The notes beneath the pieces are model-generated. The model had not been told where the DNA came from. It made no database searches and was given only the letters and a program-made list of their open reading frames with translations. From Bugula neritina (Eukaryota > Animalia > Bryozoa), in NCBI GenBank assembly GCA_964035545.1, contig OZ037770.1, forward strand, positions 15,366,642 through 15,430,641: a stretch of 64,000 bases of DNA, written 5' to 3'. Made by a program: the position numbers and the translations under genes. This document shows, in pieces, positions 6,851 through 60,693 of this stretch (within the stretch, counting starts at the first letter, position 1; every line of letters begins with the position of its first letter).

Positions 6851-7231
6851 ATGAAGTTAGTAGGTCTTGTATCACTTCTGCTGATTTTGACTTTTCTCCA
6901 CAACACTGTGACAGCACAGAGGGGTATGTGAGCTGACATCAATTTCTTTGTCTTATTAGAATTAATGGCGATGATAGTGACCTTTTTTCAAGGGATAAAA
7001 TTTAAAAATTAGTTTAAATAAATGGTAGTATATACATATATATATATATATATATGCTCGTGACTCCTAGGTGACCCCTAGAGTCACTTGAGCACTCTGG
7101 CTTGAGTTTACACACCTTTTAAATATGCTTTAGTAAAACTATAAGTTTTACTATTGCAAAGGTGTGGGCCATGGTACTCTGTTCTGTGCTGATGAGGGGA
7201 CAAATCCCGAAACAGCTGCTGTCCACAGATT

Positions 7232-7284
<53 letters not shown>

Positions 7285-7622
7285 GTATATGTATATATAC
7301 ATATATATGACTAATTACTCACAGTGCTATAAGACAATATCTATATATACTATAGTTTGTTTAAAATTGATATAGCTTATATATATAATTATTTGATATG
7401 CATGTATAAAACATCTTCGTTATTTAAACTATAACCAACTTATTGATAATTTATATTTTAAATGACCCTCTTTCAGACTGTACAAATCAAGATGGCCACC
7501 CCGGAATGGATGGACCTGACGGCCAAACCTGTGGAGGGGTAATTTGTGGTCACAATGAGATGTGCTGCCAGAGAGGAGGTAGAGATGGTGTTTGTGTCAG
7601 TCAAAGAGACCGTCAAGGATAA
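6851..7622 (+). CDS. Secreted 6-Cys peptide with short Gly-X-Y segment; exons 6851-6923, 7477-7622
   Basis: MKLVGLVSLLLILTFLHNTVTAQR | DCTNQDGHPGMDGPDGQTCGGVICGHNEMCCQRGGRDGVCVSQRDRQG*. Confidence 0.88.
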
Positions 7623-10880: not shown

Positions 10881-11825
10881 ATGAAGTTAGTAGGTCCTGT
10901 ATCACTTCTGCTGATTCTGATTTGTCTCCACAACACTGTGACAGCACAGCCAGGTTTGTAATATGTTGACTTATATATTATGTTGCAGTGATAGGTTTCA
11001 TTTTCAATTTCTCAAACTTCCAATTGAGTATTTAAATTGTAGTATATTAGGTATATTATTTTATAGATATGAAATAGGGCTTAGCCATAACCATTAGCTA
11101 TAATAATATTATACTGACAGCTATATAATATGTAATATGACATGCATATTATAATATATATTATAATATGACATGCATATTATAATATATATTATAATAT
11201 GACATGCGTATTATAATATATATTATAATACAACATGTACTATAATATGTATCATTATAAATCATGTTGTATTAGAATATATATTATAATATGACATTTA
11301 TTATAATATATATCATAATATGACATATGTATTATAATATAATATATATTATAATACATATCATATTATAATATATATTATAATACATATCATATTATAA
11401 TATATATTATAATATAATACATATGTCATATTATGATATATATTATAATACATGTCATATTATAATATATATTATAATATGACATGTATTATAATATATA
11501 TCATAATATGACATATGTATTATAATATATTATTATTATACCATTAGGGAATACAATGATGCAACATTAATATAGTAGAGTTTAACCTTAATGCCATTGA
11601 CCAACTGTGTCAGTATCTTTAAATGTATGTTTCATTTTAGGCTGCCAATCAGATGCTACAGGTCACCCTGGACCAAAAGGACCAGAAGGGCAAATGTGTG
11701 GAAATACAGTCTGTGGTTCTGGGGAAAGATGCTGTCGCAGCGGATCAGGAAGTTATTGCTATGATACAACCAACAGAGAGGGCAGCGGCGGCTACAATCG
11801 AGTTTTCAATAGATATATCCACTAG
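10881..11825 (+). CDS. Secreted 6-Cys peptide with short Gly-X-Y segment; exons 10881-10953, 11641-11825
   Basis: MKLVGPVSLLLILICLHNTVTAQP | GCQSDATGHPGPKGPEGQMCGNTVCGSGERCCRSGSGSYCYDTTNREGSGGYNRVFNRYIH*; paralog of the 6851 gene. Confidence 0.88.
11413..11524. repeat. Perfect 112-bp AT-rich palindrome inside an intronic AT-rich repeat (about 11120-11540)
   Basis: Arms are exact reverse complements about the centre 11468/11469. Confidence 0.85.
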
Positions 11826-13834: not shown

Positions 13835-14485
13835 ATGAAGTCCCATATCTTGGCATTGTTTCTGTTTGCAGTGCTTTGTCTCTTGGCAACAGAAGCATGT
13901 AAGTATTTTTTTCTACTCTGTGTATATGCTATAAATTATTTGTAATCTATATTTAATTGTTTAGTATAAAAGAGATATGCTCACCACCTAAAAAATATCT
14001 ATGCTATATTATATTAGAGCTATAGAAGTTGATTGGATCTATTTTCATTTCAAATAATTATAGTTTAATATTTTGTCTTTATTTCTTATAAAATAGATAA
14101 TAATCACCGTTATGTAGAGTTAGTTAAAAGCCCACAGCTTAACCTAGCCATGGAAATAAAATATGTAAGCTAAGAATAATTTCCAACAATTTTATAATGC
14201 AGTTCATACTCTCAATCAAATAATATTTTGTTAGGCATTGGTCTACCAGGTTCGCCTCCATGTAGTGATGATACACGCGGTTTGCGTGGATGTCCAGAGA
14301 CGAGACTTGGCCAAAAAAGTTTAGATGGTATACCTGGGCCAACACACAAATTTAGATGTAGATGTTTCATTAGACCTGGAGCTCCTGGGTGTAGCACCCA
14401 TCATGAATGTGGAAGGCAGTATTGCTGCTATGACTATGCAGCCGGAGAGAACTTTTGTACACCTTCTGGAAGAGATCTTAATTGA
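13835..14485 (+). CDS. Secreted peptide with degenerate collagen segment plus WAP-derived domain (10 Cys); exons 13835-13898, 14235-14485
   Basis: MKSHILALFLFAVLCLLATEA | CIGLPGSPPCSDDTRGLRGCPETRLGQKSLDGIPGPTHKFRCRCFIRPGAPGCSTHHECGRQYCCYDYAAGENFCTPSGRDLN*. Confidence 0.87.
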
Positions 14486-15897
14486 ACACAATGTTCAACT
14501 CTGTTCCATAATCCCTTATGAAAATCTGTAGTATAACAACTATATATAATTATTACTTAAACATTTTAATGCATAATATTTACGTGAAATTGTATGTATT
14601 TTTCTTATCATGACAAATAAACTAGATCTTCTTAAAAACTCTCTATTTCTAAAATATGAAATCTTATGATTAGATTGTTACTATATTCTCAACAACTGCT
14701 GCGTTATTGTTTTTACCTTTTTCCAAAGACCGAAAAATTCTCAAACATTTATAGTTTCTCTATCAAAAAAGCTTAAAAATTATTACAATGTTATTAACAA
14801 GCACTAACAATTTATACATATACAGCATATAGGTATATATATGAGAATATAATATATTATAATATTGCATGATTCTTCAACCTACTAGCTGTTCATATTT
14901 AATTGTAAAAATCAAAATTATATTTACTTTGAGTGATGCAACTTTCCAAAATTTCTTTAATAAGTTGAGAATGAAAATTTAAAGCAAAAAATTTAACATT
15001 TCTTACGTTAGACCACAATATTACAACATTCAATAATGAGTTTGGGTTGAGATTTTTTGACTTTCAAATTGTTTGAGTTACGCGTCTTTATCGTATTGAT
15101 TCGTAAAGAAATTGCTCTTAAATCTTCATAAATAATAATTTGATCAAAATAATATTATGTGTAAAATTCAGATTCAGATACTGCTTACCATGCATCAACT
15201 CATATTGCATGTTTGTCTGAGATGAACTTAAATCTATAGAGAATATCAGTTGAATTAGTTAAAATCAATTAAGTTTGACCATGCAGTCCAAATTTGTTAC
15301 TCGCAAATTGTCGGGTATATGTTGATTGATTTTTGCTTGTTATATAGTTGTATATGGAAAAACAGTTAGCAAGTTTTTAAAACTAACTGGATATAAGTAT
15401 ATACCCAATTTTATCATGCATAAGGCATGAGTTGAAAGCACTGAATAAATGCACAAAAGTGTCGAAATTAAGAAAACTCATACAAACATGAAAACGATTG
15501 CAGATAAACACACAAAGAGAGATAAAATCGGAATCAACTACAACCACTGACATAAAAGCTGATGTTTTGTACAATTATAGGAGTGAATCATCAGTTATAA
15601 TAGAGTGAAAAGATTTGTAAATATTTATGCAAAGTTCATAATGAGGAAATTTAATTAGCATTTTAAATAGATAAATCAAATAGAGTTAAAAAACACATGC
15701 ATAATCTTAATCTGATATGTTACAATATTATGAATATTTCACCTACTTATGTACTTCTACAAGGAAATACACCTACATAATGGAGTTCATATCCTTGTAC
15801 TGCTTTACTCCAACCTGTACGCAGTGTTTCTACTAAATACACTTTCTTAATTGATATGATTATACTAATAATATGAGTTATATTTATTATGTGTATA

Positions 15898-15977
<80 letters not shown>

Positions 15978-15978
15978 C

Positions 15979-16033
<55 letters not shown>

Positions 16034-16311
16034 GTGCCGAATACGCTATTAACCAGAAAAGGTTTTTTTAAGAACAAGGAAAGATCGTTACTTTTTAAAA
16101 AGTTTACAGAGTTTAAAAGAAAGATACTTGCAACATTTCGTCATTCATGCATAATGTTAATATGTTCAACTGCAATCTGGACATAAATTGAGTATATAAA
16201 CAGTTGGCTCTATAGGTAATACTTAACATAATTAAATTATCTCTTGGATTACGAGAACAGATAACCACGTCCCAGTATAATATTCTTGTATTATTTTCCA
16301 GACAGATAAAA

Positions 16312-16886
16312 ATGAAGCTTTCAATTTCCGCAATGCTTTTATTTGCAGTGTTTTGTCTTTTAGCAACAAAAGCATGTAAGTATCTTTAACATATTTTAAA
16401 ATAAAAAAGTATATTTCGTAATAATTGACACTACTTTGTTAGTGTACAAAGCTTTATTTTTTAACTCGGAAGAAATTGCTATGTTATGAACAATCTCTAG
16501 AACTTTATTAAATTTATTTTTATTTCAACCAGTTTAAAATTTGCTTGTTTGTTAGCAATTTTCTGCTTTTGTTGCTATTATATTGCAGAGGTCTATATTA
16601 ATATATTATAACAAAATGAAAAAAGTTAAAACAAAATCAATATAAAAAAATGATTATCAATCACTAAAATATAAAGTCAAGTAATGCTTTACCTGGTTCA
16701 CCTGGATGTGTTGTAGCGGCCGGATGCCCAGGTCTACCTGGTTTACCCTCAGATCCCCCAGGCCCACCTGGTGCAGCTGGATGTGGTTGCAACATTAGAT
16801 TTGATAAGGATGGATGTAGAAGTCACAGTGAGTGTGGACCAGGACAACTCTGCTGCTATGAAGGGAGATTTAACGTCTGCCAGTAA
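16312..16886 (+). CDS. Collagen-like plus WAP-derived secreted peptide; exon 1 16312-16375, exon 2 start uncertain (16681 or cryptic 16717)
   Basis: MKLSISAMLLFAVFCLLATKA | (C)NALPGSPGCVVAAGCPGLPGLPSDPPGPPGAAGCGCNIRFDKDGCRSHSECGPGQLCCYEGRFNVCQ*; the homologous acceptor reads AA, not AG. Confidence 0.65.
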
Positions 16887-18654
16887 CTTAAAAAATGGAG
16901 AAATCAGCGCAATAGAACTTTGACTCTTATTTGAATAAGTTTTGCCTAATTTTCCTCTGATGTTTTTTAATAAACTTCTTATTACATTCTTTGTGAAAAG
17001 CTCTAACAGTTATGTTTCTTTACATTTATATATATATACATCATTTCATTGAAAATAAACTTGCATAGCTATAGTGACAAATATAGTTTTTGCTTTTATT
17101 TTAAAACACAAAACTTGTTATTAGCTGAGGGTATATTTTTAAAGCATAAACCACTAAAAAACATATTTGCAAATTGTTTTTTAAAAACACACTTTTGATT
17201 TAACTAATAAGCAGCTTACTACAAACTAAAGGTAGCAAATCAAAAAATGTTTACATTGTAAAAAGGTTAAATTGAAGTATACAAGTTTCTGCAGATATTA
17301 TTTAGTAATAAAAATCACATTATATAATAGAAGTAGAAAAAATTACATATATTTATATTTATACCAACACAACCAACAGTAGGAGGAGCAATTTTAATCA
17401 AATGTTTCTCAAAACAGTATTTTAAAATCAAGTTAGAAAGAGTTTTATAATTCACACCATTTCAAGTGCACATCTCTTTTCTATAAACTTCAAAACACTA
17501 GACACTAGACGCTATAGAAATTTACAACTAAACACCATACATTGTTATATGCAACAGAAATTGTTTGGTATTGATGTAAACATTTATTTATAATAATCTT
17601 ATTAATTTACTAATTTTCTGCATATAATCATAACGATCAATTGTTTCACTTATATCAAGATAATTATATTAAAATATTGTATTATATATTGTGGTAATAA
17701 AACACTCGTCAATCAACTAACTTGAACACTTTCACTTTCTTTAATGATTATAGCTAAAAGCAAGATAACATAAACTACACAAAATAACTGGGGTATATAA
17801 TATATATATGTGGCATGAAAGGTGGCTTAAAATAAACAGATGTCATGCAGTGGTTCGACATCAAACCAGATGTGATGTAAGAGCATTCAGACAAAGTTGC
17901 TCCTGTGCCACATTAAGCAGAAATACCTTTTTAATCAGAGCTCATGTTCACACTGCAGGGAGAGAAATAAATGAAATGCTATTTTTGTTCTATTCAAGTT
18001 TTGACTGAAAACTAGGCATCAGATTATATACAAAGAAGAAACACATTTTGTAAATACCACGCTTTATGTTCATCTACAAACTGCTCAGTAAGCAAATAGA
18101 ATTAACATGTTGGGTGAGTAAATAAAACCAAGTTCATTATAAAACACATATACGCATAATCAATCTTGAAGTTGAACAGCGTTATAAATAAATACTATCG
18201 TCTTGCTTATGAAAATAAACACCTACCTGATTTCATATCCGTGTACTGTTTGTCGCAAACAAAATTATACAAGATTTGCATATTATATGCCTCCCTGTCC
18301 AAAAACCATGTAGGTCAATCTAAAATGCTTCGTCACAACTGTTATATCATCATTGTGTATATTCAATATTTATGGATCACAAAAAAAGAGTTAGAAAGTT
18401 TTCTTTAAAATTATTTATAAGGAAACAAGGAAACTTAATTGGCTCACTGTTGGATGGACAAAAACAAAACCGGCAATTATTTTTAAAAAGTTGTCAAATT
18501 ACTTAACAAATAGGATATGTGTTCTGGCCAAGTGTTTATTTTACACTGTAATTAGGACGCGGTTTGGATATAAAAATGAAAGTTTTAGACATCTCACACC
18601 ATCACACTACTGGACTACGCAAATAACAGCATATCTTCCAAACAGATAATTAAG

Positions 18655-19231
18655 ATGAAGCTTTCAATCTTGGCAGTTTTTTTGTTTGCGGTGTTTTGTC
18701 TTTTGACAACGGAAGCAAGTGAGTATTATTAACATTTAACAATTTAAGTATATTTAATGTTTGATAATTACTCTATATCTTTATTTGAGTATGCTAACAA
18801 CTATTCTATTATTTCTGCCTCATTAAATTTCTTTAGCTTAAAAATCATGATTGAATATAATTGACATTAGGATGAGGTAAATCTAAAGCAGAGTTTTTCT
18901 CTACAAGTATATACAAATTAGATTGTTTACATAACTACCAACATTTAAGATGCAGTGATACCATTAAAATGGATCACCAAACATTACTTTAATTTCAGCT
19001 CCAGGTAGACCTGGAAGAGTCGGACCTCCTGGTCGACCAGGATGTCACGGAGCACCTGGACAACCAGGCCGGGATGGAATGCCTGGAAGACCTGACTCAG
19101 GCTGTGCATGCAGACCCATCAACCGTTATGCTGCCGGCTGTAAAAGTCATCGTGACTGTGGTAGAGGGAGAGGACTCTGCTGTTATAATGGCCGGTACAA
19201 TGAGTGTCGATATAATTATTATGGCAGATAA
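18655..19231 (+). CDS. Secreted peptide: 10 Gly-X-Y triplets plus WAP-derived Cys domain; exons 18655-18718, 18999-19231
   Basis: MKLSILAVFLFAVFCLLTTEA | TPGRPGRVGPPGRPGCHGAPGQPGRDGMPGRPDSGCACRPINRYAAGCKSHRDCGRGRGLCCYNGRYNECRYNYYGR*. Confidence 0.92.
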
Positions 19232-19510
19232 ATTGGACACTCTAATCTGAGAAATTTTGAACAGCATTTAATCAAATATGGCTTCTAAACTCTTCTTTTA
19301 ATGTTTTTATTACCCTTTTGTTAAAAAATCTGTTGCTCTTCTATAATTTTGATACAGAAAATTTACTTAAAATCATATAATTCATCTCATTCACACAAAT
19401 AAACATACATGCACTGAAAAAAAAAATGTTATTGTACTTTGGAAAAACAAATTATATATTTTGCTATACAAGCTTATAGTTGTATTAGTATACTAGTATA
19501 CATATGTTTG

Positions 19511-19578
<68 letters not shown>

Positions 19579-20300
19579 CCAATATATAGAAAAACTTCTT
19601 TAATCAGGATTTCTCACAGTTTGCATGGAGAGGAATTATAAATAAAATGCTACTTTTGTTCAATTCAAGTGTTGGATAAAAATTAATCATCATATATTAT
19701 ATGTAAAAACAAATATACTTGTGATTATATATTCATATTTATGCAAATATCTATTTTAAAGAAAGAAGCTATCATTTTGAATGAATTAACAACACAGAGT
19801 TTAATACACCTGCATGCATAATCAATTAGGGATTGCAACAGTATTGTGAATGTATTGTATCTATAACTTGTTTATGAAATTATACACCTACCCGATTTCA
19901 TAACCTTGTATACCTTGCATACACACTCTATAAGCATGTTATACAAATATGCATTATATAAAACTTTGCACTTATATCTCAGAGAATATGTCGGTTGACC
20001 TAAAATCTTTCATCACAGGATTATATCATCAGTTTGTGCATTCAATATTCACGGATTAAAAAGATAGTTTGATGGTTATCTTTAAAATGATTTATGAGAA
20101 CACAAGGAAACTTGGCTCACTATTCGCCAAACCAATTTTCATTATAATTGAAGATGCCGTGTACTATGGCTGTGGTTACATTTTACACTCTAATTAGGAC
20201 ATGGTTTGAGTATATAAATGAAAGTTTCAGACATCTAACACCATATCACACTACTGGAACATCAGTTTCACTTCAGTAAACTATTTTTAAATAGATAAAG

Positions 20301-20825
20301 ATGAAGGTTTCAATCTCCGCAGTGCTTTTATTTGCAGTGTTTTGTCTCTTGACAACAGAAGCATGTAAGTATTATTAACATTCGATTTAATTGTATATAT
20401 ATAATATATATTTATATTTTAGTTGAGATTGCTAAAAATTGTTCTATTGCTGCTTCATTATACCTTGTCAGCTTAAAAAATTATTTAATAATTGACATTA
20501 GAATGTTGTAAAGCAAAAATAACAGTTGTTCTCAATAAGTATATACAAGTTAGATTGTTCACTTTGACTAACATTCAGGATGCTGTAATATCAGTGTGAA
20601 TTGAATATTATTTTAATTCCAGCTGCAGGTCATCCAGGGTGTGACGGAGCACCTGGTCAACCAGGTCAAGGCGGAGCACCAGGCCGTGATGGAATGCCTG
20701 GAAGACCTGGTTACGGTTGTCCATGCAGACCTATCAACCCTTATGCTGCTGGTTGTCAGAGTCATCGTGAATGTAGATGGGGAGGATCATGCTGTTATAA
20801 TGGCCGGCACAATGTGTGTCAATAA
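20301..20825 (+). CDS. Secreted peptide: about 10 Gly-X-Y triplets plus WAP-derived Cys domain; exons 20301-20364, 20623-20825
   Basis: MKVSISAVLLFAVFCLLTTEA | SAGHPGCDGAPGQPGQGGAPGRDGMPGRPGYGCPCRPINPYAAGCQSHRECRWGGSCCYNGRHNVCQ*; TATATAAA at 20211. Confidence 0.92.
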
Positions 20826-21048
20826 TATTATGGCAGATAAATTGGACACTCTATAATTTGAGAAATTTTGAACAGCATTTAAACAAACTTTTCTTAACTT
20901 CTAAAATTTTTTTTCATATTTATTTTCCATAATAGAAGTAATACGCTTTTTACAACTATTGATTATACCTCATTGTCCAAAATAAATACATGCAAAGAAG
21001 AAAAATATTTGCTTTTATTTTTGACAAAGTTTCAACTTCTTTCAGTTT

Positions 21049-21049
<1 letters not shown>

Positions 21050-21104
<55 letters not shown>

Positions 21105-21160
21105 ACGCACACGCACACGCACACGCACACGCACACGCACACGCACACGCACAAACACAA

Positions 21161-21191
<31 letters not shown>

Positions 21192-21352
21192 CACGCGCAC
21201 AAACACAAACACACACACACACAAACACACACAAACACACACATACCACACACACACACACCACACACACACACACCACACACACACACACCACACACAC
21301 ACCACACACACACGCACACGCACACGCACACACACACGCACACACACACACA
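21050..21352. repeat. Compound (CA)n/(CACACG)n microsatellite
   Basis: Directly visible. Confidence 0.95.
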
Positions 21353-22472
21353 TGTATATTTGTAAACACATTATATATCCAAAGCAATAATTATGCAATT
21401 CTAATAAAAATTATCTCATTATTAAATAAATGTCGAATGTGAATAACAATTTACTGTGTATTTGGCAACAAGTGTATATAATTTATATTATAAACTTGAT
21501 CTTATAGTTTTATACATTTTTAAATTTATATAATATTATACTCTACATTTAATACACCAAAAACACTGGCCACAAGATTTGTATTTTTAGTTAACATATC
21601 AGAGATTAAAAAGAAGATAAATAATCAGAAGTAAACATCAGTGTAATTAAGCAGAAGGTTGGTAAAACAGCTAAACATCTGGCTGGGTATACTTGATCAG
21701 TATAATCAGCATAGTAATCGGAGAATGTGAAACGGGTGTTATTTTCAATCAAGTATACTGTTTGGAAATTGTATAATCAACATAATAGATACAGAAATAA
21801 CTGACCAGTCAATATATTGTTATGTTTATGCCAACTTTTCAATATTGAAACACAATTTGCATTTCAAGTGAATAAATCAAACAGAGTTTAATAAGCACAT
21901 GCAAAAACAATTAATTTTACAGTGAAACAGTATTATGAATGTATTGTATTAACTTGTTTATGAAAATACACCCATCTGATTAAAAAGGTACATATAACTA
22001 ATATGGATATACTTACACAACCAAATATTATATAACTTATTCTAACATGCCGCATGTAAACTGCTATATCTGCATGACCACATCTCAACACTAATTTTCA
22101 ACAAAATATCTGGTTTTATTTAAATTGCTTTTTCATATATAAAAACTTGATACAAATATAATTATTGAATTTAAAATGAATGTTTGGAACTTTTTTTAAT
22201 TATTTGTAAGGAAAAAACCTCTGCTCACTGCATTTGCCAGAAATTGAATAAAACGGCAAACATTTCTATATAAAAAGACAGTAATTTTATTCAGACGATG
22301 CACGCTTCACAGGATATGCCTAGTTTTACCATAAACTGTGATGATGACAAAGTAAGAGTATATAAATGAATTCATCAGGTATTAGATACCAGTGCATCAC
22401 ACAGACTATAGTAAACATTATAGAGTCTCAGCTCAGTAAACTTTACGCTATAAATTCTATAAACAGATAAAT

Positions 22473-23121
22473 ATGAACTTCTCAGTTTTATCAATCTTTT
22501 TGTTTGCAGTTCTTTGTTTCTGGAGGACAGAAGCAGGTAAATATCTTCTAAATCATTAAGTATATGATAACTAAATTATTTCCTGAGTTAGCTAAAAGAG
22601 CAGCCGTAGTTTGGAGGGCTAGAGCATTTGCTAGCGAAAACAAAGTCATGGGTTCGAGCCCGACAAAGATTATTAGTATATATGATGTTAGGAAAAGCAT
22701 CCGAAGTTATAATTGGACCTAGCTGCGCCCTACCTAAATAAGTCTTTATAGACTATTTTAAAAATAACGTTTTGATCAGGGTTTTCTCACAGAGATAGTG
22801 CGAATGAACTTAAGTATGAGTTAAGTAAACATTGAATATATTATAATGCTCCCTCAATTTGAGTTTATAAAATTATAGATTGTTGGGTTTGATTTAGATT
22901 TTGAGATGCTGTTAAACCTTGTCAACTGATTACTGCTATAATTCCAGGAGTTCCAGGGATAAATGGATTACCTGGTTGTGACAATGTACCGGCTCCAGAA
23001 GGTCAACGTGGTAGCTGGTTACCTGGTTGTCGGTCTGAGATTAGACGCGGTTATCCGAGACAACTCTGAATGCAGCGGGAGCTGCTGCTTCTATGGAGGC
23101 AAAAATATCTGTGTCTATTAG
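22473..23121 (+). pseudogene. Frameshifted collagen/WAP-derived peptide gene; exons 22473-22536, 22948-23121
   Basis: MNFSVLSIFLFAVLCFWRTEA | GVPGINGLPGCDNVPAPEGQRGSWLPGCRSEIRRGYPRQL* (TGA 23067-69); the Cys core continues in another frame as DNSECSGSCCFYGGKNICVY*. Confidence 0.8.
22598..22800 (+). mobile_element. tRNA-derived SINE-like insertion in intron
   Basis: Box-A-like GTAGTTTGGAGGGCTAGAGC, box-B GGTTCGAGCCC at 22651, then GATGTTAGGAAAAGCATCCG; related decayed copies near 13065-13220 and 17810-17990. Confidence 0.55.
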
Positions 23122-23553
23122 TTTAAAGAACTGCCGGAGATGCTAAAACCACATTTTTTCAAAAATTGTTATTTTGTACGACTGATAAAATTTCCTAACA
23201 ATATTCTAAAGTCTTGGCAATAGTTGTTTTTTCGAATTTATGACAATTTGTGTTGAAGATTTTAATTCAAGATTTAATAAAGTTATGCAATGATTTATAT
23301 AAAAATATGCGGTTCCATATTAATTCAGAAATAAACACATTTGAAGAAAAACAGATTTAATTTTATGAAATCATCCCAGGAAATATAATTGGCAGTTTAC
23401 TGGTAATGAATAAAATTGCCACGGCAACACCATTTATGCAAATTAAAATACATGCAGACATTTTACACCTCCTCAAATTTGTACATCCTGGTACAATGCT
23501 TTACCTGGTTATATTGAGAGTAGACATTGGAACACTGCCAGATATGTAAACAG

Positions 23554-24430
23554 ATGAAAATTATTCATGTATACGGAAGTCGTGCAGACAAATATTTGGG
23601 AGATTTATATAGGAGACCAGGGATCATCAAGTCTGTTATAGGTCTTGCATTACTTCCACTGACTTTGAGTTGTCTCCACAACGCTGTGACAGGTGAGTGA
23701 GCAGATAATTTTTACAGTATTATACAAGTTCTACTGAATGATTTGTCTTTATTATTGCAGTGGCATTCATTTATGCCTTAAATACTTTTTAAAATAATTT
23801 TTTATCTTATTTATAGAGAAAATACTAATTTTTTCATATGAAGCAATCAAAGATGTGTGCAATTATTTTAAAATGTTAGGTCTGGCAAAACCAAAACAAA
23901 CGCATGTATATTATACAAATATAAATATACACAAGTTTAAATTTTACAGAGATCACAAGGTATGTGACATATATATAATGAGCCAATATAAACTAACTTT
24001 TCAACAGTTGACTATCTTTGTTGTTTTTTTTGTATCGAACTTGTTAAACAAAAAAACTAACAAAATTGAAAGCTTTCAAAAGTGGAAAATAGATTTTAAA
24101 GCACTAATGAGTTTATCTTAATGTATATATATATATAGGCATATAGAATTTACAATAATATGTCTGTCATGGCAATAGTGCAGCAACCTATATTTTAATA
24201 TATTTATGTTTTAATTCTTTTTCCTTCTCTTTTTGTTTGTTTGTAGGGCTTCAGAAATTTTATTTCTAGTTGCTCTTATAGGCTGTGTGAACATTGATGG
24301 TAGCAGATAGAGCTGAAGGTTACTCAACAAAGAGATTTCTCTCAAAGTTGCAGAAAAAATACCTGTGAAGGGAGTAAAGTGTGCTGTACCAATGGAGTAG
24401 AAGAAATCTGTGTCTATCAAATGTATAACT
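23554..24430 (+). pseudogene. Decayed MKLVG-type gene; signal exon ends 23692, exon 2 from 24282
   Basis: ..IKSVIGLALLPLTLSCLHNAVT|gtgagt (family ATG reads ATC; in-frame ATG at 23554); exon 2 GCVNIDGSR* then, frameshifted, QSCRKNTCEGSKVCCTNGVEEICVYQ. Confidence 0.7.
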
Positions 24431-25802
24431 TACTGGCTAAAAGGGAAAGCAAGTTAAACTTGGCTTCTAGTTACAGAAAAGTGTTTTAGCTGCTTATAGT
24501 ATAGCTATAGTGTGTTACATGTTTCTAATATATTCAAATACCCATGCATTTTATTACTTCAAGCATAGCAATTTGCAAAATAAATTTTGCTTTATTTTTA
24601 GTTATTTATAATATGAATTAAGTATGATATTAATTTAATTGCATTTTATTAGTACATAATATTTTCAAAAAATTAATTAACTTTTTAAAGTACATCTACT
24701 TAATTAGGAATTTTACCGTATGCAAAATTCATTTAGAACATGTTATTTACGCAAATAACACTTAAAGTGAATTATAATTTATATACTAACAAAATTAAAA
24801 GCTTGATTATATTAGACCCAAATGACATATACAAAATCTTTGTAAACAACTACAATTTTGTTTGTCTGTTGATGTGTAAACTCGAACCACTTAAGTAGTT
24901 ATTAAAACTTTGTGTATAACCAAGGTGAATAGTAATAATCAAGAATATTCACAATAAATAACGTGTTTGCGTCTATTGACAAAGACACTTATCACATTAA
25001 TTCGTATATAATATAGATCAATTCTTACGTGATAATGGAATTGTGCAAACATATTATATTGAATTTTATGGAACCTATTATAGGTGTTCATAGCTTTACT
25101 GCAGTTTAAAAAAGATCAAAACAAATTTGATGACCATTAAAAAGATGATTAAATTTTATGGAGTAGGAAATAATTCAGTCAATAGTCAATCAACAGTCAA
25201 CTGCACACTAATATCGTAAAACAAAAGAAAATGCTAAGAAAAAGATTTTGGGGAGTAATATATTTTTGCATATCAGGTAAATAACTCAACCCTAGTTGAG
25301 TGGCAGCTTGCATAATCAATCAGGGAGTGTACAGGGCAGTACTATGAATATATTTTATCTATTTCATCATGAAAATACACCCACTTGATTGAATGCATTT
25401 CCTTGTACAATCTTACTCAAACATGTTTGTGAACTTTCATGCGTACAAAATACTGAAATCATTTTGAACAAGATACAGACTGTATTCATATACAATTTAT
25501 TGTCAAATATACAGAAAAAAGATTAAAGCTTGTTTTTGACTTTAATGTGAGAAAACAAGGAAACTTGGCCATATGCCAGACGACATGATGTAAAATGTCA
25601 CTTAAATGAGAAAACAGGATGTGCGTGTCCTTAACTACAAGTATGCCAGATACCATCTGGAACTGTAGTTAGGACGTGCATGGGATGGTATATAAATGAT
25701 ATCTTTAAGCACATTATACTCTAACTGCAATTTGAACACTTATTCTTATTTCTGTGCATCATAACAATATTATCATCTAAAATCTAAACAGCTGATATAA
25801 AG

Positions 25803-26398
25803 ATGAAATTTTCAGTCTTTGCGATTTTTTGTCTGTTTGCTGTCTTTTGTCTCTTGACAACAGAAGCACGTAAGTATTTTTTATAACTAAATACCAGTAA
25901 AAAATATAAGTGATATTTTAAGATATATTTTTTTTGAACAGTTAGCAAAATAAATAGCGTGGTACTTTAATTGTCGTATTTATTAGCCTAAGCAACAAAA
26001 GGCAGCAATGAAATATTTCAATTATACAAGCAAGAAGTTATAAGTTGCATTAGGTGAGTCTATAAAAAAACAGTATTTGTTTTAATTTGCATCTTGAGAT
26101 TGAGTTAACAAAGAAGTTTATAATCCTATAAAATAAATTATATTATATAATTCAAGTACTTCGCCACTATCCAACTGTTCGACCACCTACAAGAGAGCCT
26201 CCGTGTAAAGATATTTTTGGACCTGATGGAATACCTGTTTACCTCCATTGGTGCAAGTGCCACATCAGATACTTTGCTCTAGGGTGTAGCAGCCATGATG
26301 AATGTGAAGGAAAAGCTTTGTGCTGTTTCAATGGTCAACTTAACGCTTGCAATACTAAATATACATTAACTAAAGACATTGCAGACATTCAAAGTTGA
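25803..26398 (+). CDS. Secreted Pro-rich/degenerate-collagen plus WAP-derived peptide; exons 25803-25869, 26157-26398
   Basis: MKFSVFAIFCLFAVFCLLTTEA | LLRHYPTVRPPTREPPCKDIFGPDGIPVYLHWCKCHIRYFALGCSSHDECEGKALCCFNGQLNACNTKYTLTKDIADIQS*; AAG acceptor. Confidence 0.83.
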
Positions 26399-31428: not shown

Positions 31429-31528
<100 letters not shown>

Positions 31529-36363: not shown

Positions 36364-37124
36364 ATGAAGTTTACTATTTTCACTCTGCTTATATCTGTGC
36401 TGCTTTGTGTCTTCATTTCTGGTAAGCCTACAGACATTATAATTTTATTTAATACCGTTGTGTGTTCTTTATATTTCATAAGATGAAAAGGTAGAGCCTC
36501 TTTAATGAGCTATGCTAGCCATGTTCTCAAGTTCAAATCTATTTTATTTCTCTTATTGGAAACCTAACTCTGTAGAGGCTTTGCTCATTATATGCTTATT
36601 ACTATTTAAAAGTATGAAACTCTTAAATTATGCATTGTTATATATCGCTAAAAAGATTTTTTCAAGTATCTCACTCGGTCATTCTTTAGTGCCATAAAAC
36701 TTATAATATATTTAACTAATTTAATTAGAAGGTATTCAAGTACGTAGACACATAATATATAACTTAAGGGCTTTATTCAAAGTTATTTGAGCTATCCAAT
36801 CTATAAGCAAAGCTTTATTATAGTCACGGCCTTATCTTAATTATAATTAGACCTAAATATTTTATTATTCTTGTGAGTCTATACTACACTTATGTATACT
36901 GCAGAGTGTAGCAATGTTTTACTTCAGTTTAACTTCCTTAAACAGCATATTTCGTCAGCAAAAACTGCTTTTAATACAAGTGTTTGATTGTATGCTTTCT
37001 TCTTTCAGGGTCGGTTGGAGTCTGTCCGGCAGGAGTTTGTGCCTCTGACTGCACAAGTGATCTACCAAAATGCCTGAACGGTCTGGACTGCTGCTTCAGC
37101 ATCTGCGGCTACACCTGCATGTGA
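36364..37124 (+). CDS. Secreted compact WAP-domain peptide; exons 36364-36421, 37009-37124
   Basis: MKFTIFTLLISVLLCVFIS | GSVGVCPAGVCASDCTSDLPKCLNGLDCCFSICGYTCM*; 8 Cys. Confidence 0.87.
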
Positions 37125-37738
37125 CCACAACTCCAACATAAAAAGTCAAACTCTCTTAAATTAAATAAATGAACATTGCTTTAAAGTCTTTGTGTGAACG
37201 TGTAGAATTTTGACTATATCTGCGCTTTTATAAAAAAAGGATTTAGTTATAATAAATTTGTTCATCCATAAACAAGTCTAATTTGCACTTTTATAAATAG
37301 CAGGCTGCACAATATATCACGTACAGTACCCAATTGTGATACATTTGAAGTTAATAAACAACTTGGGCTATCACAGGTAAATGTGCAGCAAATGCACTTC
37401 TTATAGTAGCAAAACTAAAAATATTTAAACTATAAATAACATAAGTAAATAATTTACCTATATATTCTTTTGTTCTTCTCAAAATATATGTACTACAAAG
37501 TATTCTAGAACCAGTAGAAAATAAAATTTGAGATGTGATACAAATATTTACGCAGTTCATTGTTTAATCTCCGCTGCTTTAAATATAATACACATCTCAT
37601 GCTAGCTTTCTACATGTCTGCTAAGAAACAGCTTCATATAGCTGATAATTTCTGTTATATATAGCTCACAAAACTAATGATCTAATACCCATTTTTATAC
37701 AATATATAATATCACTTGTAGTTATAATATAAGTTTAA

Positions 37739-37833
37739 AAGTAGTGGCTATAATTAATTGGTATAAGCAACTGCAGTTGCTTACCAATTAATTATAGCCA
37801 CTACTTAAGTCTTAGCATGCTAAGACTTAAGTA
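37739..37833. repeat. Two overlapping palindromes (68 bp with a 2-nt bulge; 32 bp perfect)
   Basis: 37739-37806 centred on CTGCAG; 37802-37833 centred on GCATGC. Confidence 0.88.
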
Positions 37834-40377
37834 TAACTGTAATTCTGATGGTATGACTTGTCCTTGTGATAAGATTGTTTGCCTGTCTATATAGTTGTCT
37901 ACTTAGTTGAGTGTTGCAACTATATTAAAACAGTCTATTGCATTCCAGTCATATTACTTCATAAGTACATTAATTTTACCCTTAAAAATGAGACTTCAAA
38001 AATTTGGCACTTCTCTGTACTAAACGCAGTGAATGCAGCTGTTGTGTCTCGCATGGGAAATAGTTTGGCTACAGGTTGATTGATCATGATTGACTAGTGA
38101 GAACTAATACCTGGAAAAAGCTTTTACCATTTTGTTACATAATTTCATAGAGCAAAAACTCATATACATTAGCAGCTAAATTGTGAAAAATAGCTAAAGA
38201 CTAAAGCTTTCAAATATGTATAATACTAAATTAAGTAAAATGACTTATATAATATCCAATTTACTTCATTTCTATTGTTAGTGATCTTTTTCAAAGAATA
38301 ACTAATATTATTGATCACGCCTTTATGTTACCATCATATAAAGTTAAAGGTTTTTATGAAAACATTCTCTGTCCAAATTTGTAAAGCCCTGTTGGTATCA
38401 CGTTTAGAGCTATAGGAAGCTTTATACATCCGCATGGTGTGCAATAAGTTAAAAGATATAAAGTGTTAACTGTAACATTATATATCTGTTAGTTTCCAGT
38501 ATTATATTATATATACATGCAGATTCACTTGATATAGTCTGTAACTTATATAGTCAGCATCTATATAATATTTATAATGCGAGCACATGTACATTCCTCA
38601 ATACCTAATGGATTCTCATCACATAAATCATGCAATGATGTCTAATTGATATTTTAATATATTCTATAATATTAATGATAATATTCCGCAAAAGTATTAA
38701 CATATGGCATCAGTTTTTGTAAATTATTTTCATACTTGCTGAAAATCTTTCACAACATAAATCTTGCTTTAATTGTCATGCAATGTCAAAATTTCAAATT
38801 ATGCAAGGCTAAAAAAGTGCCTGAAATTTATATTTTTTATAACTGTTTTTATAAAATCTTGGCACTCTCAAAACTTGAAAGTAATAAAAATTTCATTTTT
38901 TCAAATGTGTCACCTTTATTTTAAAGGGAAATTGCTATTTTCAAAGGAATTTATAAGTAATTTGCATGGCCTATATGCATGTATGTTGCAATTATATTTT
39001 TCAAATTTATTGTAAAATTTTATAAAAGAAAAATATTCAGTGGCTCTGTATCACAGCCTATACTTTGTGTTGCTTACACCAATATTTAGATAATAAGAAT
39101 TTCTGTATTTATTTACAATAATTTATATTAAAGTGATATAACTGAATCAGTTTCTAATTCTACCTGAACTATAGCTAAAATAACTATCTGCAATATGTCA
39201 TGGAAACCACTTGACTAATAATTATATAATTTTCTTTCTGAATAATATTAATGAAACAAAGCTATAGCTCAGGTTTTGCTACTTTTCATAGAGTAGTATA
39301 GCTTGCTAAAGATTATGATGAATAAAGAATTATGCAGCATCACCCAAATTACTAAGAAATTAGTATAAAACATAAGAAAGCAAGCAAAAGTGGAGAAAAC
39401 CTCTCTTATTTAGTTGTATTTGTTAATATTTTCTTAGTTTAAGTCACGAAACTATATAATTATACAAATTAGTAGCCGACTTGTGAAAATAGCTATAGAA
39501 CTAGAGATATATATTATATAGAGTAATGACCCTATCTAGCTAATAGGAACTTTCTTTTGTCCCAAAAATATAATTATTTTCAACTATATATATTATAGTG
39601 TTCTTCTATGAAAAATAAAAGTCTAGCCATCATCAGAAGTAAATATTTTGGAGTTGCTTTCTTAGTGGATTATAATACAATTATGCTACTACAAACGTAA
39701 GTTGTGTTCTCCTGCTATTCCATCTTATAAAATCTAGGACTATTCCTAAATTGAGATTTACATGAGAATTCCATTTTCAAACTCTTAAAAGTAATATATT
39801 TTATGTTAATACTTTTTATGGAGATTCAAACTGAAAAATTGTCTTACAGTTATACCATGTTACAAATTTCCAATTCACAATTATAGGCACTACAGAAAAG
39901 CAAAAAATCAGACATTATAACCAAAGACTTCGCACTTTAAACACAAGTTAAAACAAAATCAAATTATAATGATTAAGATACCTGGTAAATTTTAATATCA
40001 GTTTTTAAATATATGTGCAAGTAAAACATTTTTGCATTTGGCATCAAAATTATGGATTGTAATTGTCGGGGCTAAATGCTTAATATAACTATTTTTGAAT
40101 AAAAATATTTCCGAAAAAACTGGTGAATAAATATTGAAAATAAATTTAGATCTTATTGGCCACCTATCAATTTTATGCATGTCCAATCACATTACCTGTA
40201 GCTGTAAATAGTTCACCATATGCATAAAGGCTCTTCTATACAGCTAGTATAAAGCTACCAGATCAAACTGCAGCACACTATTATACTAACTTGAGATCAG
40301 TATATATATACAACTATTCACACGGAGCTAAAAGCCAACTATCCACACGGATCGAGACCAAACATGAAGGACCAAAC

Positions 40378-41237
40378 ATGAAGTCTGTTGTTTTTACCCT
40401 GCTGATGCTTGTGTTTATTTGCTCTTTCACTTCTCAAGCTGGTACGTATGTTGTTAGACTGAATGCATATACTATTTTACGTATTATATATAGTATAGTA
40501 TTTTATATAGTGTTTTTTATATAAATAAAATTAATATTGTGCTCTTTAATAACATAATATACCAGCCGTTTATTTATTATATATGTATCATATGATATTT
40601 TATTATAGTTATTGAAATCTTAATTTCTGTACGATTTTCTCTCATTTTGTTCATCATTATATAACAATCAATATACGTTTTTTATCAGAAAGTTTTTTCA
40701 AATGTGTTACTTTTATATTTATTAAGTGTCAAATAAACAAAAATTTTAGAATTAATTTAGAAAGTGCATGCTGTAAGTGCGGTCCATTTTTATGCAACAT
40801 ATCATAGTGGCCGGTTTAATTAATGTAGCTTTAAGTTTTATGCTTCTTGCATGAAAATAGTAATTTGAAATACATGACTATAATGACTCCAATTTAAAGT
40901 TTAAAAAACCAGCATTTATTAAAAAGTCTTTTTGCTGTAGTTGCAGCACATTCTATATCAGATTTAAAAATAAAAAAAAGATGCTGCATATTTCGGCAAT
41001 TTTTTACCTGAATTCAACATTTTAAACAAATTTCTGCTATATTGTACCATGTAAATGTTTATAATACACAGACTTACTATAAGTTTAATCTTTTCTTTAG
41101 CTTACCATAGATCTCGATGTCCATCATCTAAAACAGGAACTTGTGCTATCGAATGTATCCGTGATAAGAGCTGCTCAGGACACAGGATCTGCTGCCATAA
41201 TGGCTGTGGGTATAGCTGCGTATCTCCCACTCGCTAA
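40378..41237 (+). CDS. Secreted single WAP-domain peptide; exons 40378-40441, 41101-41237
   Basis: MKSVVFTLLMLVFICSFTSQA | AYHRSRCPSSKTGTCAIECIRDKSCSGHRICCHNGCGYSCVSPTR*. Confidence 0.92.
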
Positions 41238-44044
41238 CAAACTTCCTTTCACCAGTCAAGTTTGAACATGTCTTCAAAACCTGCGTCTAAGATGGTTACA
41301 TTTCGCAAACAAAATATTATGTGTCTTTAGATTGTTTTGAAGATGTTAATAAATTGTTTCGAGTACACAACATAGTCTGGTGTTTGAAGTTAATTGGAAA
41401 TTTTCAGCTGAATTTTAGATAACTTTATTAACATGCAATTATAACTGACAGCTAAATCATATATAGAGAGTACGGTGAGATATAGCATAAGAAATTGAAC
41501 ATAAAATTATATACTCAGTTGTCCTTTAGAAATGTCTTTAGATATTTGATGACATATATAAATAACTAAAAATGTTTTATCTGCCTATAATATATGATTG
41601 TAAAACAAACAAAAACTTAACAAAAAACTGCTATACTTCTTTAAAGTATAATTTGTGTGTTTTTAATAAACTCTGGTTTTAAGCAGACATTGGGTTAAAA
41701 CATATAAAACTCATGTCTCTATATATTTCGTTTAAAAAAAACATGCATAATCTATAAACATTATTATATAAACTTCACTGCATGAATTCATTTAATTTCA
41801 ACCAAGTTTTATACCATCAAAAGTTGTAGTTAGAAATTTAGTTTATGTAAGATAAAAATTTTTAAATTACATTGTTAGTTATTTTTAACTTTCAGCTATA
41901 CATATCACAGACTAGGTTACAAGATTTATATCAAGTTATATATGGTATAATATAATAAATATATAAACATAGCTGGTGTAATGCAGTATCATAATATATA
42001 GCATATAACAACACACAATGTAATATAATGTAGTAAAATAAGTTACATAACAACCTTGTATTATGATATAATATGTAACATAATATAGTTTGATATGGAA
42101 TAATAATATTATATACTACAATACAGTAAACTGTATTTTAATTGATACTATATATAATATAATACAGTGTAACATAATCTTATATTCAAGCCGTTTGTCC
42201 ATGTGCACTTATTCTGGTAGTTTTCCATAGTTTGTTATAGCGGCTGTCGTTTACTGACAGTAACATTTACACAGGCAAAGTAATTATTTTGTAAGCCTAA
42301 ATCATTACAAAATAAAAAATTGTAAAAGTCTTTACTTGGATTATCAAATTACAATTTATAGTCTCATAAATTTCTACTCAGCCAGGTTTTGCTTTATTCT
42401 GTCCAGATGTGAGCTCATTATATTCTAATTATGTAAGAAGCAGACATTTTGTTTTTACGAACCAACACCAAAAGTCGTTGGTTGACCTGCGCCTTGCAAA
42501 AAATGATGCAGCTGCCCAATCGGTCAACTGAATTTTGATTATATATATATTTGATTTATGAGGTAGAAGCTCTCATTGTTCTATTTCAAAATACTCGTAG
42601 CTATAGGTCTCTGTCACTAAAAAGCTTATTTTGAAAACTATATAAAGTAATTGTGATGCTTAAAAGATTCTCCCTTCTGTTCACTAAAGCAACTCATATA
42701 ATTTAGAATCCAAACTCTAAGCGTGCCAGAAGACAACTGCTTCAATATGTTTCTGGCCTACAGTGTGAAGCTGAGATTGTTAAACAAATCTAGTGTGACA
42801 ACTCAATCATGCAAAAGTATCACAAATTGTAAATTCTGCATCAAATTTAGCCAAAAATATCTCCTAGTTTGATTTTGAAAATAGCGCATTCTTCTCTACT
42901 TATTTAATTTACCTTCACGACGTCCTCCTTCTTAGGGTGGGGGTTGAGTTGATTGTTTAAGCCTCAGGTTTTTTGCTTTTGAAGTACGGTTTCATTTTTA
43001 TAATCACATTGAGTGCATTTCTAAAGTTACAGAGATTAGTAACACCTCAATGGTTGACAATTGACAGATGGTTGCAGGTGCTTGAGAGTAATCCTATACA
43101 CATAGCTATAAGCGATAAAACCTGCTGCTATATATACATTTATCGGTTTCCTTTTGATTGAAAGCCGATATAGTGTAAATTAGGCATGGTGTGGGTACGA
43201 TTGATTGGATTGTTAAAATTATATTAAATTAATTAGTGACGCAGCAAATAATTCTTATATGTGTTTTCAAAAGATATAATACGTTTTTATTATAAAGAGG
43301 CAGTGCATTGCTTCAGCTAAGCCTTGGTTTTTGTACCACTTGATTAGAATTGCTAGAATTTTCTAAACTGTAGTAGAATAATTGAAAGTGGCTAAACTGA
43401 TGTACTAATGGTAATATATACAAGTAGTTTTAATACAGTATAATAAACTTGAAGTATCACGATGCATTGCACTTAAAATAGTAAACAGTTCACAGAGTAC
43501 ATTAGTGTGACAACTCCTTTATAGGCTAAGTTGTGAAATATAGTGGTTTTACTCCTTGTTGTACTATATGCAGCATTACAAAATTTTCACCCTATATTTC
43601 ACCTTATATATAGTAAAATTACTACAATGGTGACTATATGTCACTGGAGTGTTTTTGATATAAAAGAATTAAAAAGTGCAGCAATGCATATACCCCATGT
43701 CATAAGGTTTATAGCTGGCAGCAATCCTTCATGCTAAATTAGTAACAAACTAAAATAGAATATTGCTCACTTAGGTTGCTCAAATACCAATAATAACTTA
43801 TGTATCAGTGTGCATGTAAGCTTTAGGTTTTGTCAAAGAGCATACCTTTGTACTCTTTGCTCAAGATAATAAAATAGATCAAATCTAAGCATATTAGAAG
43901 TTGTTTTTCTCAAGGAGAGACAACTCTCAAAGAGTTGCTACTGTGTACTGAGCAATGCTAACGTGACACTCTATCATTGCTCAGCAACCAAAGCCACAAA
44001 AATGAGTTCAAGTCTATTTTGCTTCACAATTTTATTATAGGAGA

Positions 44045-44297
44045 CAACAACTCTTAATGTAAGAGAGGACATTGCAGCTAGGGGACCGCAACTCTTAATG
44101 TGAGAGAGGGACATTGCAGCTAGGGGACCACAACTCTTAAGGTGAGAGAGGGACATTGCAGCTAGGAGACCACAACTCCTAATGTAAGAGAGGGACATTG
44201 CAGCTAGGGGACCACAACTCTTAATGTAAGAGAGGGACATTGCAGCTAGGGGACCACAACTCTTAATGTAAGAGAGGGACATTGCAGCTAGGGGACC
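44045..44297. repeat. 42-bp minisatellite, about 6 copies
   Basis: Unit ACAACTCTTAATGTAAGAGAGGGACATTGCAGCTAGGGGACC. Confidence 0.92.
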
Positions 44298-44514
44298 TCT
44301 GAAAAAAGTTTATTATAGATGATGAATGCCTATTTCTGCAAACTTGATAAATGGCAGGTCGTGGAAACTAAAACTACAAACATTAAATGCTATAGCAGCT
44401 TACTATATAATGCTAAGACCTGTAAAACTAAATCAACGTATTTTAATTAAGTCTTATTCAAGTTCATTTCGAATTGGTGAAAAATGCCAAAAATAGGCTG
44501 CATCATAATATGTA

Positions 44515-45843
44515 GGGGTAACGGGGGCACAACGGTCATAGGGGTACAAAAAGCCGACCAAATTGTGAGAGAACTTATTGACTTAGAGTTGTGATTTTTT
44601 TTCATAAAAAGATATTGACAAAATTATTTGGTCTTTGTAGTTTCAACACTTGCTGAATATAAATGTTGAAAAGGCGAGTAAAAAACTGTTTTTACCTACT
44701 TTTTGTAAATTTTTTAGGATGTCATTAAAGCTTTATAACTTTTTACACCCAAAAGCAAGAAGCCTATATTTTACCAATATTGTTGCCATTGCTTGTCTCT
44801 ACATTGCTTAACTAATATAACAGCAAACACTGAAATAAATTTTTCTTGAGGCACATTTATTTTCAATTTGGCCACACGGGGCACAATGGGCCACGCTGAC
44901 CGAGGCACAATGGGCCACCTGATTATTGCACCCTGACTACTGTTATTAGTTTGTTTGCCAAAAAAGTTGGTTGAAATGTTACTAAAATTTATAGATATAG
45001 CCATTTCTGACCTTTTTGTAAAATATTAAAGACATCATGGTAAGACTACAAAACTACAAGTTGAAGCTCCCTTAATATATATACATCTGGTGAGGTTAAA
45101 GCTTTGCCATTTTATACATAATACAAAACACTCTGCTGTTGCTACTAGTAGATAGTTATAATAATCATTATATATTACACCATTGAAAGAATATACATGT
45201 ATTTGGCTAAAATAAATTGTGATTTGCTCATTCGCTCCCCCCTCTCCCTTCCGTTCTCCAGTCACCAACCTCAGCCATGCATGCTCCTTATAGCTATACA
45301 GTTCATAGAAAAAAGTCCACTCGGAATTTTGTAGTACATGTTACTAAAGTTTTTTTTTAATAAACGTTCCTCTGAGGTAAAAATAACAGAATATATTTAG
45401 TTCTAAACAGTAATGATAATGGCACTGCAGAACCGAGTGACGTGCGTTTGATTTTGCCTTCTTCTGCTATCTGTAGTGGCACAAACTGTACAGCTAAAAC
45501 ATGAATTTTGCTGTAGATCTGAAAGAGTATCTGTATTTATTTGTAATATTAAATAAATAAAGATCAGATGTAACAAAATACCAAAAATTTCAATATATTT
45601 GTTGTGTCCCACCCAGTGGCCCATATTGTACCCCGGTACCGGGGCACAATGGGCCAATTTTTTCGTCATGAATATTTCATTATTCTGAAAGTTGTGAGAG
45701 ACCGAGATAGAAACAACAAACTGGTACCTGTAACAGACAACAGATGCAGCATTAAGACTAGAGATTATTGAACTAGTAACTTAAAAAGCAGACAAATGAG
45801 AGCAACAAATGCAAAATTCGGCCCGTTGTGCCCCCGTTACCCC
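44515..45843. mobile_element. Non-autonomous Tc1/mariner-superfamily (pogo-like) DNA transposon, 1329 bp
   Basis: Perfect 21-bp TIR GGGGTAACGGGGGCACAACGG; TA on both flanks; internal GGCACAATGGGCCA repeats near 44880, 44905 and 45643; no transposase ORF. Confidence 0.88.
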
Positions 45844-45930
45844 TATAGTCGAACAGTGCACGCTTACGCGTGTACCGGTGCGTTGCTATATACCAGCTTT
45901 TATTCAAAATAATGAGCTTTGTGGCCTAAG

Positions 45931-60502: not shown

Positions 60503-60546
<44 letters not shown>

Positions 60547-60631: not shown

Positions 60632-60693
<62 letters not shown>

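Follow-up and report, generated by a model that had tools for sequence, protein, structure and literature searches.

We analysed a window of 64,000 nucleotides from the bryozoan Bugula neritina (the whole stretch of DNA under study; contig OZ037770.1, G000:C6:15366642-15430641, in a genome of 216 Mb with about 29% G+C). An array of about 22 tandem two-exon genes for small secreted WAP-type peptides lies on its forward strand, and two of these genes, g18655 and g20301, encode a signal peptide, an unbroken run of Gly-X-Y triplets and a cysteine-rich head. Both are real genes and both are unannotated. Their layout, a Gly-X-Y tract followed by a remodelled WAP core, has not previously been described as far as we searched. 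We tentatively read the products, at slightly below an even chance, as monomeric WAP-type defence peptides in which the tract would form an extended Gly-X-Pro arm.

The two genes have GT/AG splice sites, a phase-1 intron and intact open reading frames. Their parts are as follows.

18655..18718, forward strand: g18655 exon 1, signal peptide, 64 nt, with a phase-1 GTGAGT donor, a match to the exon-1 profile (nhmmer, E 4.5e-18) and a TATA box at -86
18999..19231, forward strand: g18655 exon 2, mature peptide, 76 codons plus a split codon, stop at 19229-19231
19004-19093, forward strand: g18655 tract of ten Gly-X-Y triplets
19094-19228, forward strand: g18655 head with seven cysteines
20301..20364, forward strand: g20301 exon 1, signal peptide, with a phase-1 GTAAGT donor
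20623..20825, forward strand: g20301 exon 2, mature peptide, 66 codons
20628-20717, forward strand: g20301 tract of ten Gly-X-Y triplets
20709-20822, forward strand: g20301 head

An AATAAA signal lies 167 nt past the g18655 stop. This plan is that of the array, in which a TATA box stands 86-119 nt 5' of the ATG, the signal-peptide exon is 64 nt long in nearly all copies and ends in a phase-1 GT donor, and one exon, followed by AATAAA, encodes the mature peptide. All of the approximately 22 genes have this TATA box, signal exon and intron phase in common.

An earlier note on this DNA, made from the letters alone, had described about ten uninterrupted triplets in each gene, rich in Y-position proline and containing one cysteine. 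The count is exactly ten in both, proline holds the Y position in 7/10 triplets of g18655 and 6/10 of g20301, and the single cysteine of each tract sits at an X position. These are the only Gly-X-Y runs longer than five in the six frames of the window, and the longest run in 100 block-shuffles of the window was five. The composition given for g18655 was also accurate (R13, K1, D3, E1), and both mature peptides carry a net positive charge, +10 and +3. All protein searches and folds reported below covered exon 2 or parts of it. The Pfam Collagen model (PF01391) scores 22.0 bits (E 1.4e-4) for g18655 and 19.9 bits (E 6e-4) for g20301; the tracts have the unbroken, proline-rich Gly-X-Y repeat, but both scores are below the gathering cut-off of 27.2, and a tract spans only half of the 60-position model.

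The head of g18655 follows the pattern CxC-x9-C-x5-C-x6-CC-x7-C, and g20301 has x5 before the CC pair. The earlier note had this pattern right except for that last spacer, which it gave as x5/7. Its claim that the head derives from WAP and can be aligned with the neighbouring peptides held up when a profile of five heads was compared with a profile of six local WAP domains using hhalign, which returned a probability of 95.5% and a score of 39.7 over 28 columns (C3 to C8); 200 column shuffles reached at most 19.3 in score and 24% in probability. Judged by this alignment, the C-terminal two thirds of the head is WAP-derived. WAP cysteines C3, C4, C5C6 and C8 line up with those of the neighbours, and C7 is replaced (GR where the neighbours have GC). 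Upstream, g18655 and g20301 have the CxC plus the one cysteine in the tract; MAFFT pairs the second cysteine of the CxC with WAP C2, and the C1/C2 correspondence is ambiguous.

Four further copies in the array were also modelled.

13835-13898 and 14235-14485, forward strand: g13835 exons 1 and 2, degenerate tract, ten cysteines including the split codon
16312-16375 and 16717-16886, forward strand: g16312 exons 1 and 2, acceptor ttgtag, interrupted Pro/Gly tract with three regular triplets, eight cysteines
22473-22536 and from 22948, forward strand: g22473 exons 1 and 2 (gene 22473..23121), four regular triplets
25803-25869 and 26157-26398, forward strand: g25803 exons 1 and 2, no Gly-X-Y periodicity, skeleton of eight cysteines kept, including the N-terminal one

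These copies had been presented as stages of a decaying stalk. The tracts are indeed homologous, as remnants such as G-x-D-G-(M/I)-P-G line up among the copies; the change may have been either decay or growth by 9-nt units. The gene models also needed revision, apart from g13835, whose tract is degenerate as had been said. In g16312 the ancestral acceptor has been lost to a 9-nt gap and the only in-phase acceptor ends at 16716, which gives a shorter mature peptide. In g22473 there is an in-frame stop at 23067-23069 and the remnant of the head lies in another frame, and so this copy is probably a pseudogene. The model of g25803 requires a weak AAG acceptor at 26154-26156.

Between g18655 and g20301 the synonymous divergence (dS) is about 0.4, and the ratio of non-synonymous to synonymous substitution rates (omega) is 0.26 in the stalk and 0.37 in the head. 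A Fisher test of synonymous against non-synonymous changes over both parts gives p = 0.003, and this pattern indicates that stalk and head are both under purifying selection. When the tracts are aligned in register the cysteine is homologous and seven triplets are common. The stalk indels are whole triplets, a 27-nt N-terminal addition in g18655 and an 18-nt internal one in g20301. Exon 2 is 80% identical and the non-coding flanks 73-75%. The X and Y residues are conserved as well as the glycines, unlike in typical stalks.

Regarding the origin of the tract, no collagen exon resembling it at the DNA level was found elsewhere in the genome. Without such a donor, and with homologous remnants present in the paralogues, capture of an exon from a collagen gene is ruled out, and the tract would have grown in place. 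We propose that g18655 and g20301 are a lineage-restricted branch of a tandem gene array for small secreted single-WAP peptides. In this branch the Pro-rich N-terminal part of the WAP domain, or else its first loop, may have turned into a Gly-X-Y tract by duplication of 9-nt units. WAP Cys7 would have been lost at the same time and other cysteines gained, leaving the total at eight. The products, cationic mature peptides of about 66-77 residues, would be directed out of the cell by their signal peptide, most likely as host-defence peptides of the WAP/crustin kind.

Several observations favour a monomer. The cysteine frameworks of the array are all even in number (8, 8, 8, 8, 10, 6, 6, 6), the N-terminal cysteine is kept in g25803 despite the absence of Gly-X-Y there, and g18655 and g20301 have no trimerisation domain; searches of the head with Pfam, with profiles and against PDB sequences found no gC1q, C-type lectin, fibrinogen-like or coiled-coil signal. 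Two sister genes of the array, described below, also have their run of four Gly-X-Y triplets enclosed by two cysteines of a WAP-like frame of six. Together, these points argue for a single chain with four intrachain disulfides, one of which would tie the tract cysteine to the CxC motif or to the core. With an intrachain bond from that cysteine, the tract would be a closed loop and could not run as a straight helix. The Gly-X-Pro tract may then be an extended, Arg-rich loop or arm of polyproline-II type that adds charge and reach, comparable to the Pro/Arg-rich N-terminal region of type III crustins.

The main alternative is the one that the earlier note had put forward, a miniature trimerising defence collagen, in which ten hydroxylated triplets would form a triple helix, locked by the tract cysteine and the CxC, and three cationic WAP-derived heads would be shown multivalently, in the manner of C1q, collectins and ficolins. 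The architecture it started from stands; we regard trimerisation as doubtful in view of the cysteine parity, the g25803 cysteine and the missing trimerisation domain. The tract itself speaks for the trimer, with ten unbroken triplets in both paralogues, proline at Y in most of them, indels of whole triplets and every glycine codon kept at dS of about 0.4. The CxC also stands precisely where the tract ends C-terminally, and in type III and FACIT collagens interchain knots occur at the C-terminal end of the helix. The genome has three to four loci with above-cut-off matches to the N-domain of collagen prolyl-4-hydroxylase (P4Ha_N), and the N-terminal segment of the C1q C chain, a cysteine plus collagen, aligns weakly with the tract (E 0.4).

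The homotrimer prediction that had been suggested as a check was positive, with a reservation. ESMFold2 gives an ipSAE of 0.48 for the homotrimer compared with 0.02 for the best control, and the interface covers residues 1-32 in all copies with a one-residue stagger. Of 30 proteins solved as pairs of one chain, 21 reach this mark, and of 23 solved as single chains none does; the calibration was made on two copies and not on three. However, by the tool's own caution the pass may be a recall of collagen, and any tract of ten Gly-X-Y triplets would probably pass. The AlphaFold2 (AF2) monomer of the whole mature exon, with a pLDDT of 41.7, is unusable.

Other points also stand against the trimer. 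It would have neither a nucleating nor a trimerising domain, WAP domains are monomeric, and ten triplets alone have marginal triple-helix stability. Each end of the helix would be left with an odd number (3) of spare cysteines. The tract cysteine is conserved in paralogues that are unable to form a helix, and X and Y are as conserved as glycine between the two genes. If the trimer were true, with three heads displayed, or six where the spare cysteines join two trimers as in C1q, these would be the smallest natural 'defence collagens', with a collagen tract born de novo in a WAP gene by 9-nt slippage and not by exon shuffling from a collagen; we consider this reading doubtful.

The monomer with a Gly-X-Pro arm, which we prefer, has its own difficulties. 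All 20 glycine codons are kept at dS of about 0.4, though a plain loop or linker needs no glycine at every third residue; the neutral probability of keeping all 14-20 glycine codons is 0.0003-0.013. Both paralogues reached ten triplets independently. The ESMFold2 trimer passes its controls, with a run agreement of at least 77% and a partner pLDDT of at least 64, and the disulfide map is drawn from cysteine parity alone. Neither the word-index search nor the profile search of 1.84 billion proteins found an orthologue with ten triplets, and the sequencing runs that hold the locus amount to one run of DNA type and no RNA run.

The assignment of the head is subject to similar objections. With Pfam WAP (PF00095), g18655 has no match, and g20301 (13.2 bits, E 0.11), g16312 (9.8 bits) and g25803 (15.4 bits, E 0.023) stay below the gathering cut-off of 20.8 bits, whereas the neighbours score 28-44 bits; the heads are homologous to genuine WAP domains and do not have the C1-C8 spacing of the eight cysteines of the family. 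A search of PDB sequences with the head profile gave no match. The AF2 model of the g20301 head has a pLDDT of 84.7, and 3 of 48,161 PDB representatives match it with a Z-score of at least 2, namely SLPI and omwaprin, both clearly WAP chains, and a designed cystine-dense peptide, but the fold match is not independent, as 9 of the 15 rows (60%) of its alignment are WAP sequences. All Z-scores are low: SLPI domain 2 aligns with Z 2.7 and a root mean square deviation of 2.9 A over 33 residues, and omwaprin with Z 2.3. Omwaprin is also the top Foldseek match, with an E-value of 1.1.

Outside the window, a search of 1.84 billion protein representatives with a head-only profile returned one member of the family, P0002 (55 aa, E 5e-11). 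It is encoded on a 1.8-kb JGI metagenome contig, L021 (1-1803; sample 3300003318), and it is the orthologue of g16312. The contig comes from the host DNA of a closely related animal, about 85% identical in non-coding sequence, and it is the sole public trace of the family that was found. Its signal exon, donor and ttgtag acceptor are the same as those of g16312, and a stop codon stands just upstream of the acceptor; this stop confirms the short model of g16312 and rules out a coding frame upstream of 16717. A word-index protein search with exon 2 of g18655 found no match, and with P0002 it found P0002 alone. A scan of metagenomes for Gly-X-Y patterns gave only generic collagens, and a feature search of the ESM Atlas only collagen fragments, at 0.89, which is a lead only. 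No named family with this layout was found in the profile search of 1.84 billion proteins, in the word-index search or in the literature, in agreement with the first impression that the architecture was unfamiliar.

The orthologue pair bears on a further explanation, namely that the tract is a by-product of slippage in the GGN-CCN-rich DNA of a birth-and-death array and that both genes are unexpressed or becoming pseudogenes. P0002 and g16312 share all eight cysteines, but omega is 0.62 and the exon is no more similar than the intron (both 84%); the tract of P0002 has five regular triplets compared with three in g16312, so the periodicity is not maintained in that lineage. Degeneration or breakage has affected four of the six copies, there are more relics at 23645-24450 and 32826-32906, and the locus is in no RNA run. 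On the other hand, g18655 and g20301 have intact open reading frames, splice sites and promoters and keep all eight cysteines. Omega is 0.26-0.37 (p = 0.003) at dS of about 0.4, and the non-coding identity of 73-75% is below the 80% of exon 2. We find slippage alone a poor account of these two genes.

A role as structural cross-linkers similar to minicollagens, polymerised by disulfide exchange into a matrix such as a cuticle, cocoon, adhesive or mucus, appears improbable as well. Cysteines stand on both sides of the short Gly-X-Y tract, and the spare ones at both putative helix ends would favour links between trimers. Collagen-rich matrices also exist in this animal, as the genome has giant Gly-X-Y open frames. 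However, the cysteine pattern is WAP-derived and not CX3CX3CX3CX3CC, polyproline flanks are missing, and the regular tract occurs in only two copies, while the paralogues are classic soluble WAP peptides. The divergence between copies is fast, which is typical of immune effectors.

The two giant frames, of 3466 and 2994 residues, lie at G000:C4:17046132-17079836. They are Gly-X-Y-rich and apparently intronless, and as very long collagens they are reminiscent of annelid-type cuticle collagens.

The window also holds a sister subfamily with a shorter repeat, outside the span of the earlier note (13835-26398).

6866..7622, forward strand: sister gene 1, signal exon near 6866, exon 2 at 7477-7622, four Gly-X-Y triplets, six cysteines
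10896..11825, forward strand: sister gene 2, signal exon near 10896, exon 2 at 11641-11825, four Gly-X-Y triplets, six cysteines

Their signal exon is their own and diverged. In exon 2 the four triplets (GHPG...) are bracketed by two cysteines and followed by C-x4-C-x5-CC-x8-C, a WAP-like frame of six cysteines without C2 and C7. A degraded copy of this subfamily, inside the span of the earlier note, occupies 23645-24450, with a relic of the signal exon that lacks the ATG (23645-23698) and a remnant of the head at about 24330-24420 with stop codons upstream.

Between 36 and 62 kb, in its right half, the array consists of genuine single-WAP paralogues, whose promoter, signal exon and intron phase are as in g18655 and g20301.

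36364..61744, forward strand: genes of the single-WAP paralogues, all above the Pfam WAP cut-off (E 2e-6 to 2e-11)
37009-37124, 41055-41237, 49563-49708, 57175-57335 and 61596-61744, forward strand: exon 2 of these paralogues

Three near-identical signal exons of the array lie at 28167-28230, 30212-30275 and 34390-34453. No Cys-rich second exon was found for them; they may serve another kind of mature peptide or stand alone as orphans. A reverse-strand relic of a signal exon lies at 31389-31434. The collagen-head type has a seventh signal exon at 32826-32906, in which a T-run is one T too long and the donor is dead, with CT in place of GT. No mature exon is recognisable downstream, where the next 1 kb is a strongly C/A-skewed simple repeat.

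Two observations concern the assembly. A near-full-length copy of mitochondrial COX1 lies on the window's own chromosome (G000:C6:11174072-11175412, 433 bits, 9 TGA); it is either a misassembly or a large piece of mitochondrial DNA inserted into the nuclear genome. Another COX1 match (G000:C17:12213-13505, 389 bits) has no TGA stops and is of bacterial type, and its contig is possibly that of a symbiont or a contaminant.

If the triple helix were true, it would mean that a collagen domain can arise in a small Cys-rich peptide gene without a borrowed exon, and that a multivalent stalk-plus-head immune architecture can be built at miniature scale from a WAP scaffold. The peptides would also be a minimal natural model of helix nucleation without a trimerisation domain. 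If the products are monomers, the array would be a clear case of rapid framework remodelling among birth-and-death defence-peptide genes, in which one disulfide was lost, another gained and a loop turned into a periodic repeat. In that case too, g18655 and g20301 add unannotated genes to the genome.

Among the closest known systems are the single-WAP peptides, i.e. type III crustins (SWD), waprins such as omwaprin and the domains of SLPI and elafin. They too are small and secreted, with a signal peptide followed by the mature region, and they have the same C-terminal core, C-x5-C-x5/6-CC-x7-C; SLPI and omwaprin are the top structural matches of the head. Unlike these, g18655 and g20301 lack Cys7, have a CxC and a cysteine inside a strict tract of ten triplets, and score below the Pfam WAP cut-off. 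In type III crustins the Pro/Arg-rich N-terminal region contributes to the antibacterial action, and collagen triplets occur in neither type II nor type III (PMC9680087).

Type II crustins, which combine a Gly-rich region, a Cys-rich region and a WAP domain, are defence peptides that likewise have a repetitive Gly-rich N-terminal region ahead of a WAP-type core. The repeats of their hydrophobic Gly-rich region are tetra- or pentapeptides (GGLG, GVPG, VGGGLG) and not collagen triplets, and these crustins have a 12-Cys signature; the source does not mention collagen (PMC9680087). Crustins are crustacean peptides with a complete C-terminal WAP domain of eight cysteines, to which types I and II add a region of four (PMC9680087), whereas the head of g18655 and g20301 has seven and lacks C7. 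In addition, the host here is not an arthropod: its genome has no arthropod R&R cuticle-protein domain. The nematode cuticle-collagen domain Col_cuticle_N is absent as well, which rules out a nematode origin.

Defence collagens (C1q, collectins, ficolins) are similar in being secreted and in their order, which runs from an N-terminal cysteine through a collagen-like tract to a globular head at the C-terminus. They are far longer, and their heads (gC1q, a neck plus C-type lectin domain, or fibrinogen-like) self-trimerise. Their helix has about 15-60 triplets compared with ten here, and g18655 and g20301 lack the self-trimerising domain.

Cnidarian minicollagens share a very short collagen tract flanked by Cys-rich sequence, and few other natural collagens are as small. 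They have 12-16 triplets plus Cys-rich domains, linked by disulfides, and the terminal CX3CX3CX3CX3CC domains have polyproline flanks (PMC4863159). Minicollagens are nematocyst-specific and Cys-rich at both ends, whereas g18655 and g20301 have a single WAP-derived head and no polyproline run. The host is a bilaterian: its mitochondrial COX1 reads TGA as Trp and AGR as Ser, in the invertebrate code, and there are about 22 mt-tRNAs, which rules out a tunicate or cnidarian origin. Their cysteine motif, CxC-x9-C-x5-C-x5/6-CC-x7-C, is a different one, as had been noted earlier.

The only described co-occurrence of WAP and collagen repeats that we found in the literature is in the cnidarian fibrillar procollagens Hcol2/Hcol3 and NvCol2, proteins of more than 1000 residues with an N-terminal WAP domain in the propeptide (PMC12549020, PMC9966395). 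In these procollagens the WAP domain is N-terminal and a trimerisation domain is C-terminal; in g18655 and g20301 the order is reversed, the mature peptide has about 70 residues, and the tract appears to have arisen within a WAP gene.

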